This document shows positions 49,268-61,503 of a stretch of DNA of 64,000 bases, piece after piece. Every line of letters starts with the position of its first letter. Positions within the stretch are counted from its first letter, which is position 1. A program made the translations under genes and the position numbers. Below the pieces are notes generated by a model. It saw only the letters and a program-made list of their open reading frames with translations. It ran no database searches and was not told the DNA's origin. The stretch comes from Monocercomonoides exilis PA203 (lineage: Eukaryota; Protista; Preaxostyla), in NCBI GenBank assembly GCA_001643675.2, contig LSRY02000015.1:930001-994000 (forward strand). Direction: 5' to 3'.

Positions 49268-49418
49268 GCGAGATATCACCTCCAGAAAAATGCAATTTCG
49301 AAAAATAGGATATGTTGAACATTTCTTTATGTCCAACTACTGTTTATAATATTTGTTGCAAATAGCGAACCTTCTTCTTTGTTAAAAAGAACATTTTTTG
49401 AAGGAAAAAATTTGTAAT
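49268..49418 (+). mobile_element. Solo relic of the element-D terminal sequence
   Basis: Aligns with 57139-57290 (GCGAGATATCACCTCC...GCAAATAGCGAA...GGAAAAAATTT) with scattered mismatches. Confidence 0.75.
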
Positions 49419-54600: not shown

Positions 54601-57600
54601 AGAATAGTCATTAAAATAATTTCGAATTAGTTTTTATTTATGATTTTTATCGAATTCTTCTGTGGGCAGTTGATCTCATATTTAATTGGAGAAGAGAATA
54701 ATTTATCAAACAATTTATCTTCCTTGTTCATTACACTCAACTGTTCTGCAAATAAGATGTCCATTCACAGAGAATAATCACATCAAAGAGTAATCGAAAG
54801 ATAACTGATTCAAGATTCTTTTTTTTAAATGCTATATTTTTTTTAGTATCCGTCCTTGTATTTTTAATATAAATTTCTTTTTTCAATAAGTGATTTTATT
54901 TTTATTGTTTGAATTCATATGTTTATTCAAATATCAGCGTGGAAACTGTTTCATGTGGTTAGAAATGGTAGTGAAAGGAATGAAGAAATACTTGCATTAT
55001 TTCAAGGAAAATAAAAAACTTTATGGATCTGTATTAAACAATAAAATAACATCCATAACTTTTCAACTTTCATTCACAGAAATAGTTCAAGAAGATTAAA
55101 AAGAAAAGATATTTTTTGACAAAACTTCGAAGAATGATATAGTTTGAAACATTCGAGGAATGATGTGAAAAAGAGCGTGAAAAATCATCAAAGAAAGATT
55201 ATTTTTAATAATTGAATAAAAAATTAATAATGAACAAAGCAAATTTTATTAGAAAATTATTTTTGTTAAAATTTTTTTATCACAATATCGAATTGCTTTT
55301 TTCCTAAAAACAATTCTCATTCAAGAAATTTTTCAAAATATATTTATCAACTGACAACACATGTTTGCTATTTTTTTCTGTTTATTCATTAATTCTTTTT
55401 CAAAAGAATTTTTGCAGTACAGAACAAGAATTAATTCATCCATTCATTTTATTATCTTCAAATGGTTTTTTTCGCATTGCTTTAATTAAAAATAATTTCT
55501 CCAAAAAAGTTAAAAATAATATAAATGAATGAAAGTGTTCGTTTTCTCAATGAAATATTAAAACATCATTGATGCCAAAGTCATATCAGTCCTGTTTTTA
55601 TGATTTTTTGATAAATCACGAAAACTTGCGGTATTTGGGATCAGAAATGGTCTCCCAAGTGAACTATCATTTTTTAATTGAGATTAATTATCAAAAAACG
55701 TAAATTTGGATATTGTCAAAGATGTGTTTTTTAAAAAAGAAAAAACCGACACTGAATAAAAAAAACTGACTGATAAAATAAAAAAGAATTTCAATTTGTT
55801 GGTTGTGCAATTTTTTGAAAATGAAAAATTCTCTCAATTAAAAATTTGTTGAGAACAACAGTTATCTTTTTAAGTTATCGTTGTGCACAATAAAATAATT
55901 TATGAATGTCAAATTTATCTTGAATTTTCAGCGCATGCTCCATGTATCATTCAATAAAGCGAATTCAAATTTTTTGAAAACAAAAAAACAAATTGTGTTT
56001 TTGTTCAAATTATTCACCTTATTTATTTAATTTTTCAAAAATGTTTCATATCTCAAAAATTCATTGATACAAAAGGTTAATATGAAAAATAAAAGCATTG
56101 CATGCATTTATCAATGTATGATAATCCTAGAATTTTTATTTAGTCAAAATATGTCAAATTTCTCGGTAATTTTTCAAAATTGATTTTTTTCTAGAGAAAG
56201 AAACAATTAAAAAAAAAAATTCGTCCACCCAAAAGGTTATATTTATATATATCGAATATTTGATCATTTTGCATATTGCAAACAACACAAGTTGCAAAAA
56301 AAATGGAGAAGGTTTTTATTCCAATATCATTTATCTGATTTTTCTCTTTTTTTTCATAGCATATTGAAGCTTTGATGAAAATTTTGTGAATATTTGTAGT
56401 CGGTTCAATTGTATTCCAACGTATGTTCATGAAAATTTAAAAGGAATTATTGGTACATAAGTTCCCTTGAAAAAATAATTATGCAATAAAACCAGAATGT
56501 TTGGAATCGCATCGCACCATTCGACATCTTTGAATATTCGATGTTTTGATAAACTTATTCGAAATGTTACAGATTGAATTTGAACCGGAAATTCTTGACA
56601 CAAATTTGAATGATAATTCTCAAAAAAACAAGTGCTGTTTGTATAATAGATAAAGAATGACTTCTGTTTTCATTATATTTATAACTCATCCAATTCCAAC
56701 AGCTTTTCTTTTCCGATCACGTCAAACTTTTTTCTCACGAATGAACATATATGGAACAAGCAGTGCCATCTTGTTGCAACAAAAGCAAGAACGGCCTTCT
56801 TCAGAATTGATCTGTATGTTTTCGTATGGGATCTTTCCGAAAATTCCAAAATAGAATATTTTATTTTCGAAAGAAATTTTGTCTTGCTGAATGATAAAAA
56901 AATAAATAAGTTCGTCAGTTTGCAACAGCAGCAAGTTAAAACAGGTTCTATTGTTGGAGTTACACTAAAAGAGGAAAGTTCAATAAAACTTTGTTGAATT
57001 AAATAATTAATAGCTTTTAATTGTGCTGCAAACCAATCTGTGCTAAAACTTCTTAAAATAGAAATAAAAAAAAAAAAAAAAAAAAAAAAAAAACTTTTGT
57101 TAATTTTTGAAATAAAAGCAAATAATCATCTGCTATGGGCGAGACATCACCTCCCTGAAAATGCAATATCGAAAAATCGGATATGTCAAACATTTCTTTA
57201 TGTTTTGCTACTGTTTTTAAAATTATTTGCAAATAGCGAATCTTCTTTTTTGTTTAAAAAAATATTTTTTAAGGAAAAAATTTATTATGGGCATTGATCA
57301 ATCGCGTAATTTGTTCATTTTCATTTCTCATTAAATAGTGAAAAGTTTTATTCAAATACCTCGGTTTGCATTTTAGATTTTGTTTCTGTTTCATGAAATA
57401 TTGCGTGCTTATTGAAATCTTTTTTAATTAACAAAAACAGTGACGTGATCTTCAAAGTTAACAATTCGAAGCAATGCTTTTAAATTAGTTACAAGCTAAG
57501 TCAAAACTGTATGTTATATTTTGTTATTATTAATATCTCTCTTTCATTTCATTAAATAATCTTTAATATTCATTATATTTTTGATAATAACTTGTGTGAT

Positions 57601-57660
57601 TTCAATTTTCTCTCATTATTGCATTGAATTGAAATCGCAAAGCGTATGCAAAGAAAGATG

Positions 57661-57820
57661 CTGGGGGAAGCAGCGCAAAGCAGGGGGAAGCTGGGGGAAG
57701 CTGGGGGAAGCTGGGGAAAGCAGTGCAAAGCTGGGGGAAGCTGAAGGAAGCTGGGGGAAGCAGTGCAAAACTGGGGGAAGCTGGGGGAAGCAGTGCAAAA
57801 CTGGGGGAAGCAGCGCAAAA
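57661..57820 (+). repeat. 16 x 10-bp G-tract minisatellite in the left arm of D
   Basis: CTGGGGGAAG units interspersed with CAG(T/C)GCAAA(G/A). Ten units carry G4-G5 runs. Confidence 0.9.
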
Positions 57821-58042
57821 TGATTTATAATGTAATTTTGACACATTAGTTGATTATTAGTCAATAAAAATGAAAATTGAGGAAATCGAGATGAGAGAAG
57901 TGAGAAGAGAGAAGAGAGAAGAGAGAAAGAAGACAAGAAGACAAAAAATGAATATATTGTTATAATTTGTTTTGCTTTTTTTAATTTATTGTTTTTTGTT
58001 AATAAATAAAAAATAAAACATTGAACAGCTCTTATTTTTTAT

Positions 58043-58936
58043 TTAATTATTTAATTTGATATTTGCAAAAATTGTTAAAAATTTAACAAATGAGTTGGCT
58101 GGATTTCTTTGAAATGTGAATGCATCCAAATATTCTTCCAAGTATTTTTTTCTGACTCCATAAGGAGGAAGATATTTTCTTAACAAACTCCACGTACTTT
58201 CAATTCGTTGAGTGTGAGCTTTAGTTATCGGATCAACAAATCTTTTGCTATGGTTGACTGTTTCGTGAAGATAATCCTTTTCGTTGATTCCGTTATAACC
58301 CTTCCAGCAATCTGTAAATATCTTTGTCTTTTTTGAAACATGCTCCTCGATTGATGAATGAAGAATTTCACGAGTTCTCTTTAAGACTGGCAATAAAAAA
58401 AGCTTTGATTTTTCTCCTTTTTTCTTTGGCCTCTCTATTCCACCCAATATCCAATTTTGCCTTTTCCCTCTTCCTCTATTGTATTTTCTCTTTGGGAAAA
58501 CGGCTTCATCAATTTCAACTTCAACATTTTCTCCTCCAATTTTTTCCTTATGTTTCTTTTTGTAGAGCGAAATTGTCTGTCTGAAATTTGCAAACATTTT
58601 GCTAACTGTAATTGGAGATTTTCCAGTGATAAAAGAACAATGTTTTTGAGACATTCCTGTCCAAAAACACAATGACATCAAACAAACACAAGAAATTCTC
58701 ATTTTGAATTGGCTAAAGTGGTTGTTGGCCTTAATGTTAATTTGTTTGTGTCTACAAACAAATCTTGTTGCATTATCTTCAAAAACATACAATTTCATAT
58801 TTCTTTTGCATTTCCAGCAATATTTGTTTTTTTCTAGTATCATATTCTCCAATAGCCAGTTGACTGTATCCTTTTCTGTTGAAAAGATTCGAAATAACTT
58901 CTTAAAGTATGTTCTCGATTCTTTTTGATTTTGCAT
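58043..58936 (-). CDS. Intact Merlin/ISXO2 DDE transposase (297 aa from the ATG at 58936)
   Basis: Uninterrupted ORF with CWKC zinc ribbon, IGGENVEVEIDEA, KRKYNRGR, WILGGIER, IFTDCWKGY, TVNHS and HTQRIESTW. The D-D-E triad is intact. Confidence 0.92.
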   Translation of the reverse strand: MQNQKESRTYFKKLFRIFSTEKDTVNWLLENMILEKNKYCWKCKRNMKLYVFEDNATRFVCRHKQINIKANNHFSQFKMRISCVCLMSLCFWTGMSQKHCSFITGKSPITVSKMFANFRQTISLYKKKHKEKIGGENVEVEIDEAVFPKRKYNRGRGKRQNWILGGIERPKKKGEKSKLFLLPVLKRTREILHSSIEEHVSKKTKIFTDCWKGYNGINEKDYLHETVNHSKRFVDPITKAHTQRIESTWSLLRKYLPPYGVRKKYLEEYLDAFTFQRNPANSFVKFLTIFANIKLNN

Positions 58937-59270
58937 AAGAAATATAAATTGATCAGCGTTTAAACAACAAAGCAAAAGTTATGGAAATCCAGCCAACTCA
59001 TTTGTTAAATTTTTAACAATTTTTGCAAATATCAAATTAAATAATTAAATAAAAAATAAGAGCTGTTCAATGTTTTATTTTTTATTTATTAACAAAAAAC
59101 AATAAATTAAAAAAAGCAAAACAAATTATAACAATATATTCATTTTTTGTCTTCTTGTCTTCTTTCTCTCTTCTCTCTTCTCTCTTCTCACTTCTCTCAT
59201 CTCGATTTCCTCAATTTTCATTTTTATTGACTAATAATCAACTAATGTGTCAAAATTACATTATAAATCA

Positions 59271-59430
59271 TTTTGCGCTGCTTCCCCCAGTTTTGCACTG
59301 CTTCCCCCAGCTTCCCCCAGTTTTGCACTGCTTCCCCCAGCTTCCTTCAGCTTCCCCCAGCTTTGCACTGCTTTCCCCAGCTTCCCCCAGCTTCCCCCAG
59401 CTTCCCCCTGCTTTGCGCTGCTTCCCCCAG
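59271..59430 (-). repeat. Mirror copy of the 10-bp G-tract minisatellite in the right arm of D
   Basis: Reverse complement of 57661-57820. Confidence 0.9.
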
Positions 59431-61503
59431 CATCTTTCTTTGCATACGCTTTGCGATTTCAATTCAATGCAATAATGAGAGAAAATTGAAATCACACAAG
59501 TTATTATCAAAAATATAATGAATATTAAAGATTATTTAATGAAATGAAAGAGAGATATTAATAATAACAAAATATAACATACAGTTTTGACTTAGCTTGT
59601 AACTAATTTAAAAGCATTGCTTCGAATTGTTAACTTTGAAGATCACGTCACTGTTTTTGTTAATTAAAAAAGATTTCAATAAGCACGCAATATTTCATGA
59701 AACAGAAACAAAATCTAAAATGCAAACCGAGGTATTTGAATAAAACTTTTCACTATTTAATGAGAAATGAAAATGAACAAATTACGCGATTGATCAATGC
59801 CCATAATAAATTTTTTCCTTAAAAAATATTTTTTTAAACAAAAAAGAAGATTCGCTATTTGCAAATAATTTTAAAAACAGTAGCAAAACATAAAGAAATG
59901 TTTGACATATCCGATTTTTCGATATTGCATTTTCAGGGAGGTGATATCTCGCCCTGCTATGTAACATGGAGGAAAAATTACCCCCCCCGCACCCAAAAAA
60001 AAAAAAAAAAGGATTGATAATAAAGATAATTGACAAATAGTTACAACTGTATACTGTTTATGGGCTACAGATGCACCGTCAACCATTTCACATAATCCAC
60101 AATTCGTAATATTTGTCTTTCGTTCCTTTTCCACTTTTGCTTTTTCTTTCAAGACTGAATTTGATACCTTTCTCCTTGTTAAATATGAAAAAATAGATTC
60201 TGTGTTTGCTGTGGAATAGGCTTGTCCAGCTCGAATAAGTGATGAATAAAATACATTTGATTCTTTTGATGAAGCTGATAAAAACGAAATATTGCATTTT
60301 GTGATCATCGAAACAAATTGCGTTTCTAACGTCTCGTGTATCGGTATTGATGGAGATATGTGATTGTTTTGTTGAGAAACTGAATAATTATTGCTCGCAG
60401 CTTGTCTAATTAGAGTTGTAATAAAGTGAGTTTTTAGTAATTCGCATTTGAAACTCACAATTGAATAATGCTTTTTCTATCGCATATTCCATAGCTAATT
60501 CCATCTTTGCAAACTGGACAAAGATTATATCGGTGAAAATGTTTTTTGCTTGCAAAGTCTTCTACAACTTTTACCAATGTGATTCACAAATAATTATTGC
60601 AGTTAATGAACGCTATTTTTGAAATGAAATTGTTCTTTTTAATTGGATTCTCGTTAACAAAAAGAAATTTTGTTTCAATTCAATTGTTTATAATATATAA
60701 AATGTATAAAATGAAAAGCAAAACCTGTGTCAAATTTTGTTTCACAACGCTTTGAAATATTCATGAATTGCGGATTCGTTTCATTTAACTGTCCGAACTT
60801 GTCTTCATATGCTTTTGCTTGAAAAAAATAATGTTATTAATAATCGAAAAAATCATAGGAAAAAAACAACAACAAATAATGAATTTGATAAAGAAATTTT
60901 CAACTCATAAACAAGTTTGGCTTTCTTTTCATCACATATATTTTTTCAACTTGACAGTGAATTTCACTGACTTCACTGACAGTCAGTAGATCATAAAATT
61001 CCATTAAAGACTTCAGTGTCAGAAGCGCATGAACAGTCAATTTTGTTAAATGAAAAATAGTCAATTTGGAACAAAATATTTGAGTTCACGCATTTTCATA
61101 GAAAAATAATACATCTTCGATGAACTTTTTGTGATCAAAAATTAAAAAAAAAAGTTTATTTTTTGAAATACATGTGACATCACAAAACAATTTGTGATCA
61201 CATCAATAACGTTTGTTTGCAGTTATGAAAATCTTATTAATTTTGAAATTAGATAAAGATTAATAATGTAATAAGTGAAACAAATATTTCACGCTTTGTG
61301 CATAATAAGCTTGAAAGTCCTTATTATGCTTCATGAAAAAATTTCTCTTGAAAAATTAAATATTTCAAAAAGTTCACTTAAAAAATTTATTATTAATGGA
61401 AACGTAAAATCAGTTAGTTTTCATTTATTTATTTATTTTATTTTGGGCAATAAAGAATTTTTATATGTTCAAATATTTCCATTTTATTGTGTTGTCAAAT
61501 ATT

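Follow-up and report, generated by a model that had tools for sequence, protein, structure and literature searches.

Within a 64,000-nt stretch of Monocercomonoides exilis PA203 (contig LSRY02000015.1 of assembly GCA_001643675.2, positions 930,001 to 994,000 of the forward strand; hereafter the window, numbered from its first letter) lies a Merlin transposon whose inverted arms are long enough for one of them to include the 3' end of the element's own transposase gene. We consider it highly probable that the arms were extended inward in an ancestor of the family, that the family inherited this build and transposed with it under selection on the transposase, and that recurrent arm-to-arm gene conversion has kept each copy's two arms alike.

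The inverted repeat pairs 57137-58107 with 58984-59954 (971 nt per arm, with an 876-nt loop between them). The sole mismatch is a C at 57145, with a T at the mirror position; one mismatch in a 971-nt repeat is far beyond chance. The Merlin element proper occupies 57138-59953 (2816 bp), of which the arms make up 69%, and is flanked by a perfect 8-bp target-site duplication (TSD; CTGCTATG, 57130-57137 and 59954-59961). Two bases, G at 57137 and C at 59954, can be assigned to the TSD as well as to the repeat. The transposase open reading frame (ORF) runs on the minus strand (ATG 58936-58934, stop 58045-58043, 297 aa). The loop is shorter than this ORF, the last 65 nt of which (58043-58107), with the stop codon, fall inside the left arm. 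An inverted copy of the tail begins 47 nt upstream of the ATG, and only 58937-58983 is unique there. An initial annotation of the window had reported the 69% share of inverted repeat, the 65-nt overlap, the 47-bp spacing and the exact TSD, and all of its figures proved correct. The features of the element are:

57130-57137, no strand: left copy of the TSD, CTGCTATG; paralogous empty sites share exactly these 8 bp.
57138-59953, minus strand: whole Merlin element, 2816 bp, tips GGCGAGA...TCTCGCC, transposase on the minus strand.
57137-58107, no strand: left arm, the 3' arm relative to the transposase, 971 nt, from repeat detection, with one mismatch at 57145.
57643-57829, no strand: tandem array of ~18 10-bp units of the GCTGGGGGAA and GCAGTGCAAA types within the left arm; mirror image at ~59262-59448.
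57990-58044, minus strand: AAUAAA- and AAAUAA-type polyadenylation motifs at and just past the stop codon, all within the arm (motif types as in PMC8767320).
58043-58936, minus strand: intact transposase ORF, 297 aa plus stop, DDE_Tnp_IS1595, with D143, D209 and E246 and an N-terminal CxxC...C.
58043-58107, minus strand: 3'-terminal 65 nt of the ORF (~residues 278-297 plus stop) within the left arm, the ancestral coding sequence; this tail aligns in relatives.
58108-58983, minus strand: single-copy loop, 876 nt, from repeat detection.
58937-58983, minus strand: the sole unique stretch upstream of the ATG, 47 nt, which may hold a core promoter or leader.
58984-59048, no strand: the derived, inverted version of the ORF tail, which forms the innermost part of the 5' arm.
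58984-59954, no strand: right arm, the 5' arm relative to the transposase, 971 nt, from repeat detection.
59954-59961, no strand: right copy of the TSD, CTGCTATG, delimited by the paralogous empty sites.

The insertion was proven independently by five paralogous empty sites (C21, C15, C57, C46 and C40), at which the left flank (56690-57137) adjoins the right flank (59954-60420) with exactly 8 bp in common. The sequence that received the element is itself a repeat of another family, whose copies number at least six and are 84-89% identical (C40, C21, C15, C57, C23 and C46). An arrangement of two head-to-head truncated copies was rejected, because the element as a whole lies within one 8-bp TSD and is found as an intact unit at further sites.

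A whole-genome search recovered three further full-length relatives, at C25:1760543-1763268 (C25a), C7:1479770-1482363 and C35:477844-488324, which were 8-13% diverged from the window copy. The arms were long in every one of them (C25a, 926 nt, or 935 nt at 99% identity; C7, 860 nt, or 765 + 131 nt; C35, 1018 nt), and two insertions were nested inside the C35 copy, at positions equivalent to 58213 and 58763 of the window. When the eight arms were aligned, the switch from paired to unpaired sequence occurred at the same base in all four copies, after ...GGATTTC, where the 3' side continues with TTTGAAATG and the 5' side with CATAAC. A motif of 24 nt that spans the new 5' junction was present at only four places in the 82-Mb genome (window, C25, C7 and C35), and a control pattern gave 0 matches over the same 82 Mb. 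A fifth copy, a fragment on C91, aligned straight across the junction. The four full copies lie in different flanks, with a TSD matching at 7 of 8 positions at C7. The presence of one junction in four full copies at different loci indicates that it arose once in the family ancestor and has been transposed since; the event is ancestral to the family and not private to the window copy. Siblings with the same junction at other insertion sites, for which the initial annotation had proposed a search, exist at C25a, C7 and C35, all of them long-armed. Its suggestion that one end was rebuilt from the other stands in that the 5' side derives from the 3' side (see below), but not as a single recent event in this copy, since four loci share the junction and conversion has been recurrent. 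A one-off rearrangement confined to the window copy would explain arms that differ at a single base; given the identical junction in three other full copies and one fragment, 8-13% diverged, and a synonymous divergence of 0.18 between junction-bearing lineages, we regard it as extremely improbable.

The direction of copying could be read from more distant relatives. Distant Merlin ORFs in the same genome (69% nucleotide and 60-64% amino acid identity) aligned through to the stop codon, and the arm-encoded tail (~residues 278-297) was occupied through residue 289 in 97% of aligned homologues, with F286 identical in 82%. Because the C-terminal tail is conserved in relatives, the 3' copy is the ancestral coding sequence and the copy upstream of the ATG is derived; as judged from these alignments, the 5' side is the one rebuilt from the 3' side. 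A comparison of the window copy with C25a gave dS 0.18 and dN 0.018, a ratio of 0.10. This ratio, together with the presence of the junction in both lineages, indicates that purifying selection acted on the transposase once its tail had been taken into the arm, and the dS of 0.18 between two junction-bearing lineages indicates that the junction is old. Between the same two copies, the arms were ~13% diverged, near the synonymous divergence, and the loops were 94.6% identical. Transposition by the encoded protein is supported indirectly by the copies of the same build at different sites and by the dN/dS of 0.10, and the element is apparently still functional.

The arms of each copy have evolved in concert. 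In the eight-arm alignment, the copies differed from one another by 67-127 arm substitutions, each present in both arms, and no side-specific shared sites were found. Within copies, mismatches between the arms were few: 1/970 in the window copy, 0/924 in C25a, 0/971 in C35 (plus a 47-column length difference in the 10-bp array) and 18/859 in C7. In the last copy a 120-nt deletion is present in both arms, and both lack the 10-bp array. Had the two arms evolved independently since the shared junction was formed, they would be expected to differ by ~8-13%, as the copies do. From this pattern of substitution we conclude that arm identity reflects recurrent arm-to-arm conversion and not one recent event. 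With more than 100 co-substitutions against none or one unshared, the family shows concerted evolution of inverted repeats unusually cleanly and on a small scale.

C7 was the one copy informative about which part of the arms was homogenised last. It is old and dead, as its ORF is frameshifted and its TSD has decayed to 7 of 8 positions. The outer 686 nt of its arms are identical, and all 18 mismatches fall in the inner 175 nt, which are ~10% diverged. Such outer identity beside inner divergence suggests that conversion acted in place and that its tract began on the tip side, a polarity that we infer from this one case. This homogenisation of the outer part is opposite to the loop-side homogenisation reported for large palindromes. 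The C7 copy also bears on a simpler account, in which each copy was inserted so recently that its arms had no time to diverge and conversion played no part. The exact TSD and intact ORF of the window copy would fit such recent insertion. We consider it very unlikely, since the lineages differ at 67-127 positions in both arms, so that the arms must have changed together, and since C7 is old and broken, yet retains 686 identical outer nucleotides beside its ~10%-diverged inner 175 nt.

The assembly was built with Canu and then polished with Nanopolish and ten rounds of Pilon (PMC8767320), a procedure in which a palindromic or chimeric Nanopore read might be taken for a real palindrome, or short-read polishing might equalise two arms. 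An artefact of this kind is scarcely credible here: four loci with different sequences and flanks share the architecture, the TSD is exact, the five paralogous empty sites fit to the base, and contigs from runs of both 2016 and 2022 extend over the loop to the edges of both inner junctions and lead from the tip into the flanks of the sibling copies. These read-derived data are Logan de Bruijn contigs from public runs of those two years on one sample; none of the contigs spans the whole element. Polishing is also unable to create 67-127 co-substitutions.

Several points nevertheless weigh against our interpretation. The Logan contigs extend only 9 and 13 nt across the two inner junctions. One contig that skips exactly 2824 nt (2816 + 8), as an empty allele would, was not relied on: its shorter side measures 21 nt, and it is ambiguous because the flank is itself repetitive (84-89% identity). 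Pilon polishing could have erased a few true differences between arms, so that the counts of 0 mismatches may be slightly flattered. A recognisable TSD was not found at C25a. The ORF is intact in one of the four copies only, that of the window, which leaves present-day activity unproven; that of C25a is broken by two in-frame stops (codons 33 and 186) and that of C7 by frameshifts. The repair mechanism, and likewise whether conversion takes place in situ or during transposition, are matters that we infer from the structure of the copies.

The history that best accommodates these observations is as follows. The element is a cut-and-paste Merlin with an IS1595-type DDE transposase, belonging to a small family of four full-length copies and some fragments, whose ancestor already had long arms that were extended inward once. 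In that event an inverted copy of the 3' region, with the final 65 nt of the ORF and its stop codon, was made on the 5' side, where it took the place of the former upstream spacer up to a point 47 nt short of the ATG. The likeliest route would begin with a break in the old 5' spacer, after which the 5' arm paired with the 3' arm; synthesis primed there would have run past the old arm border, and the new end would have been rejoined 47 nt before the ATG. The resulting build is transposable as a unit and has been compatible with a functional transposase under selection. Afterwards, recurrent gene conversion between the arms, perhaps triggered by breaks at the tips, has kept those of each copy nearly identical. 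By analogy with Galileo, a Drosophila transposon (PMC3573991, PMC3688188), the 10-bp arrays may serve as extra transposase-binding sites.

An alternative, raised in the initial annotation, is that the overlap between arm and ORF serves as a built-in copy-control device. Transcripts started in the 5' arm would fold into a panhandle, and the resulting double-stranded RNA (dsRNA) would feed RNA interference (RNAi) and limit the family; in a variant, a promoter in the 5' arm would have a mirror copy in the 3' arm that drives antisense transcription. Fold prediction for a hypothetical transcript from 59130 to 57960 gave a perfect 147-bp stem closing the ORF, and the unique sequence upstream of the ATG amounts to only 47 nt. 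Piwi domains are encoded at no fewer than four loci of the genome and one ORF has two RNase III domains, and the presence of these Argonaute and Dicer-like genes would make processing of dsRNA feasible. The family is also small, with four copies and one intact ORF, but low copy number may have many other causes. Self-silencing would further require a transcription start site deep within the 5' arm. Promoters of metamonads can be very short, and the 47-nt leader may therefore be enough. At the mean 5' untranslated region of 62 nt in M. exilis (PMC8767320), only ~15 nt of arm would be included in the mRNA. Moreover, a dN/dS of 0.10 indicates that the build did not keep the transposase from use. 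On balance we find a copy-control role for the overlap unlikely. A broader autoregulatory design would have expression from the 5' arm yield panhandle mRNA, mirrored antisense from the 3' arm, or both, so that the element is throttled by its own RNAi, with cuts at the tips starting the rewriting of the arms and repair that occasionally runs outward seeding the kilobase palindromes around Merlin copies of this genome; we regard this combination as quite unlikely. If panhandle or convergent transcripts were present in RNA, the element would be a natural self-limiting transposon architecture.

The transposase matched Pfam PF12762 (DDE_Tnp_IS1595) with 67 bits (cut-off 27; E = 2.4e-18) over profile positions 6-153 of 153, and PF12762 was present in every one of its 688 homologues. 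In an alignment of 66 sequences, including 60 database homologues and five in-genome relatives, D143 (VEIDE), D209 (FTDCW) and E246 (RIESTW) occupied columns at least 90% conserved, as did the N-terminal Cys40, Cys43 and Cys61. The profile match and the conserved triad columns bear out the earlier assignment to Merlin with an intact DDE triad. The TSD, 8 or 9 bp in Merlin, is an exact 8 bp in the window and matches at 7/8 in C7, and all copies have tips reading GGCGAGA..., in agreement with the terminal 5'-GG-3' of the superfamily (PMC8101967). The element thus shares with published Merlins an IS1595-type DDE transposase of ~300 aa, an 8-bp TSD, GG tips and a single ORF. It is unlike them in its 971-nt arms, in the tandem arrays within these, in their overlap with the 3' end of the ORF and in their concerted evolution. 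Every defining Merlin feature tested was found, and the departure is in arm length only: published Merlin terminal inverted repeats (TIRs) measure 24-462 bp, a range that is descriptive and not defining (PMC8101967, citing Feschotte 2004). The initial annotation was therefore right that Merlin TIRs are usually much shorter, the arms in the window being about twice the published maximum of 462 bp.

Merlin has been described in Monocercomonoides sp. PA203 as more than 100 copies in at least seven families (F1-F7) with 8-bp TSDs and TIRs of 23-29 bp, from a fragmented older 454 assembly (PMC8101967); that description of the species missed the long arms. The 14-nt tip of the window family was not found in the part of the supplementary text of PMC8101967 that was searched. 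Long arms are not limited to the window family. At six loci of distant Merlin families (L021-L027: C8, C23, C35:20901, C17, C36 and C32), the arms were 94-100% identical and from 0.9 to more than 1.08 kb long, lengths that are lower bounds because the arm ends lie beyond the loci examined. Long arms at all six loci indicate that they are a trait of Merlins in this genome. The loops of these families measure 1.58-1.75 kb, with ~400 nt between the ORF and each arm; what is peculiar to the window family is the short loop with the overlap between arm and ORF. The distant elements have apparently intact ORFs of 290-320 aa, and their arms contain ~30-bp tandem repeats.

A non-exhaustive literature search found no Merlin with kilobase arms or with arms overlapping the ORF, and in a search that included Mcmar1, no TIR overlapping a transposase ORF was described. 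The nearest precedent for the inward growth of arms is Galileo, a fold-back-like element of the P superfamily in Drosophila, whose TIRs of 0.6-1.2 kb contain internal tandem repeats and are dynamic in length (PMC3573991, PMC3688188). The window family resembles it in its long arms with internal tandem repeats and in the dynamic length of its TIRs. In contrast, Galileo has a THAP/P transposase and a 7-bp TSD, its TIRs recruit spacer sequence where the arms in the window take in coding sequence, and the arms of the pair quoted for it are 95.2% alike, compared with 99.9-100% here. Extended TIRs in D. mojavensis Galileo occur only in non-autonomous copies, none with an intact ORF, whereas the window copy has an intact gene. 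Classical Foldback elements and the Tm1 elements of root-knot nematodes are likewise dominated by long composite arms with short tandem motifs and include the transposase-bearing Tm1-A, but differ in their Mutator/Phantom-type transposases and 9-bp TSD, and the portion of PMC3169594 consulted for this comparison reports no overlap of arm and ORF. The element has the repetitive arms of fold-back elements (69% of its length, with ~18 10-bp units in each); its transposase is of the IS1595/Merlin type, and not of the MULE/Phantom or P/THAP types of fold-back elements. The resemblance is structural only, and a role for the element as an intermediate toward fold-back elements is conjecture. Gene conversion between arms also keeps the arms of human Y-chromosome palindromes alike. 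As in those palindromes, substitutions in the window family appear in both arms and identity is far above that predicted from age; unlike them, the structure is a mobile element of 2.8 kb, and in C7 the outer part is the most recently homogenised.

Taken with the published record, the window family widens the known form of Merlin, with arms at twice the published maximum that include part of the element's own gene and have been inherited by transposition under purifying selection. It provides evidence of heritable inward growth of TIRs in a superfamily thought to be short-ended.

The event required for such inward extension has counterparts elsewhere in the genome. At C35, mirror symmetry runs 3.7 kb past the Merlin tips (arms 474097-478861 and 487354-492069), and at C25:773727-779414 it runs 4.7 kb past the tips (arms 768987-775362 and 777779-784152). 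At both loci, the flanks are reverse complements of each other up to the tips and no TSD was found, and for these reasons they look like fold-back duplications that pivoted on the arms. These two palindromes indicate that the kind of event needed for inward extension does occur in this genome, and the window family fits a wider pattern in M. exilis of long Merlin arms acting as pivots for fold-back duplication of neighbouring DNA.

Other traces of the family were also noted. A solo 146-nt end fragment at 49268-49413 of the window, which begins GCGAGATATCACC, matches the outer arm at ~85% identity, with no second arm close by. The C25 palindrome (C25:768987-784152; L031, L037, L038) measures 15 kb, with 6.4-kb arms 99.7% identical and a 2.4-kb spacer, and each arm holds a 565-nt end piece of the window family with its tip outward. 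Its spacer contains two adjacent ORFs of 197 and 248 aa (L031:2825-4171), for which a Pfam search returned no family. The palindrome at C35:474097-492069 (L034-L036) measures 18 kb, and the inner parts of its arms are the arms of the window family. Its outer parts (3.7 kb each) carry a broken distant Merlin transposase ORF (38% amino acid identity, two stops), and its two arms differ by eight substitutions and a 47-column difference in array length.

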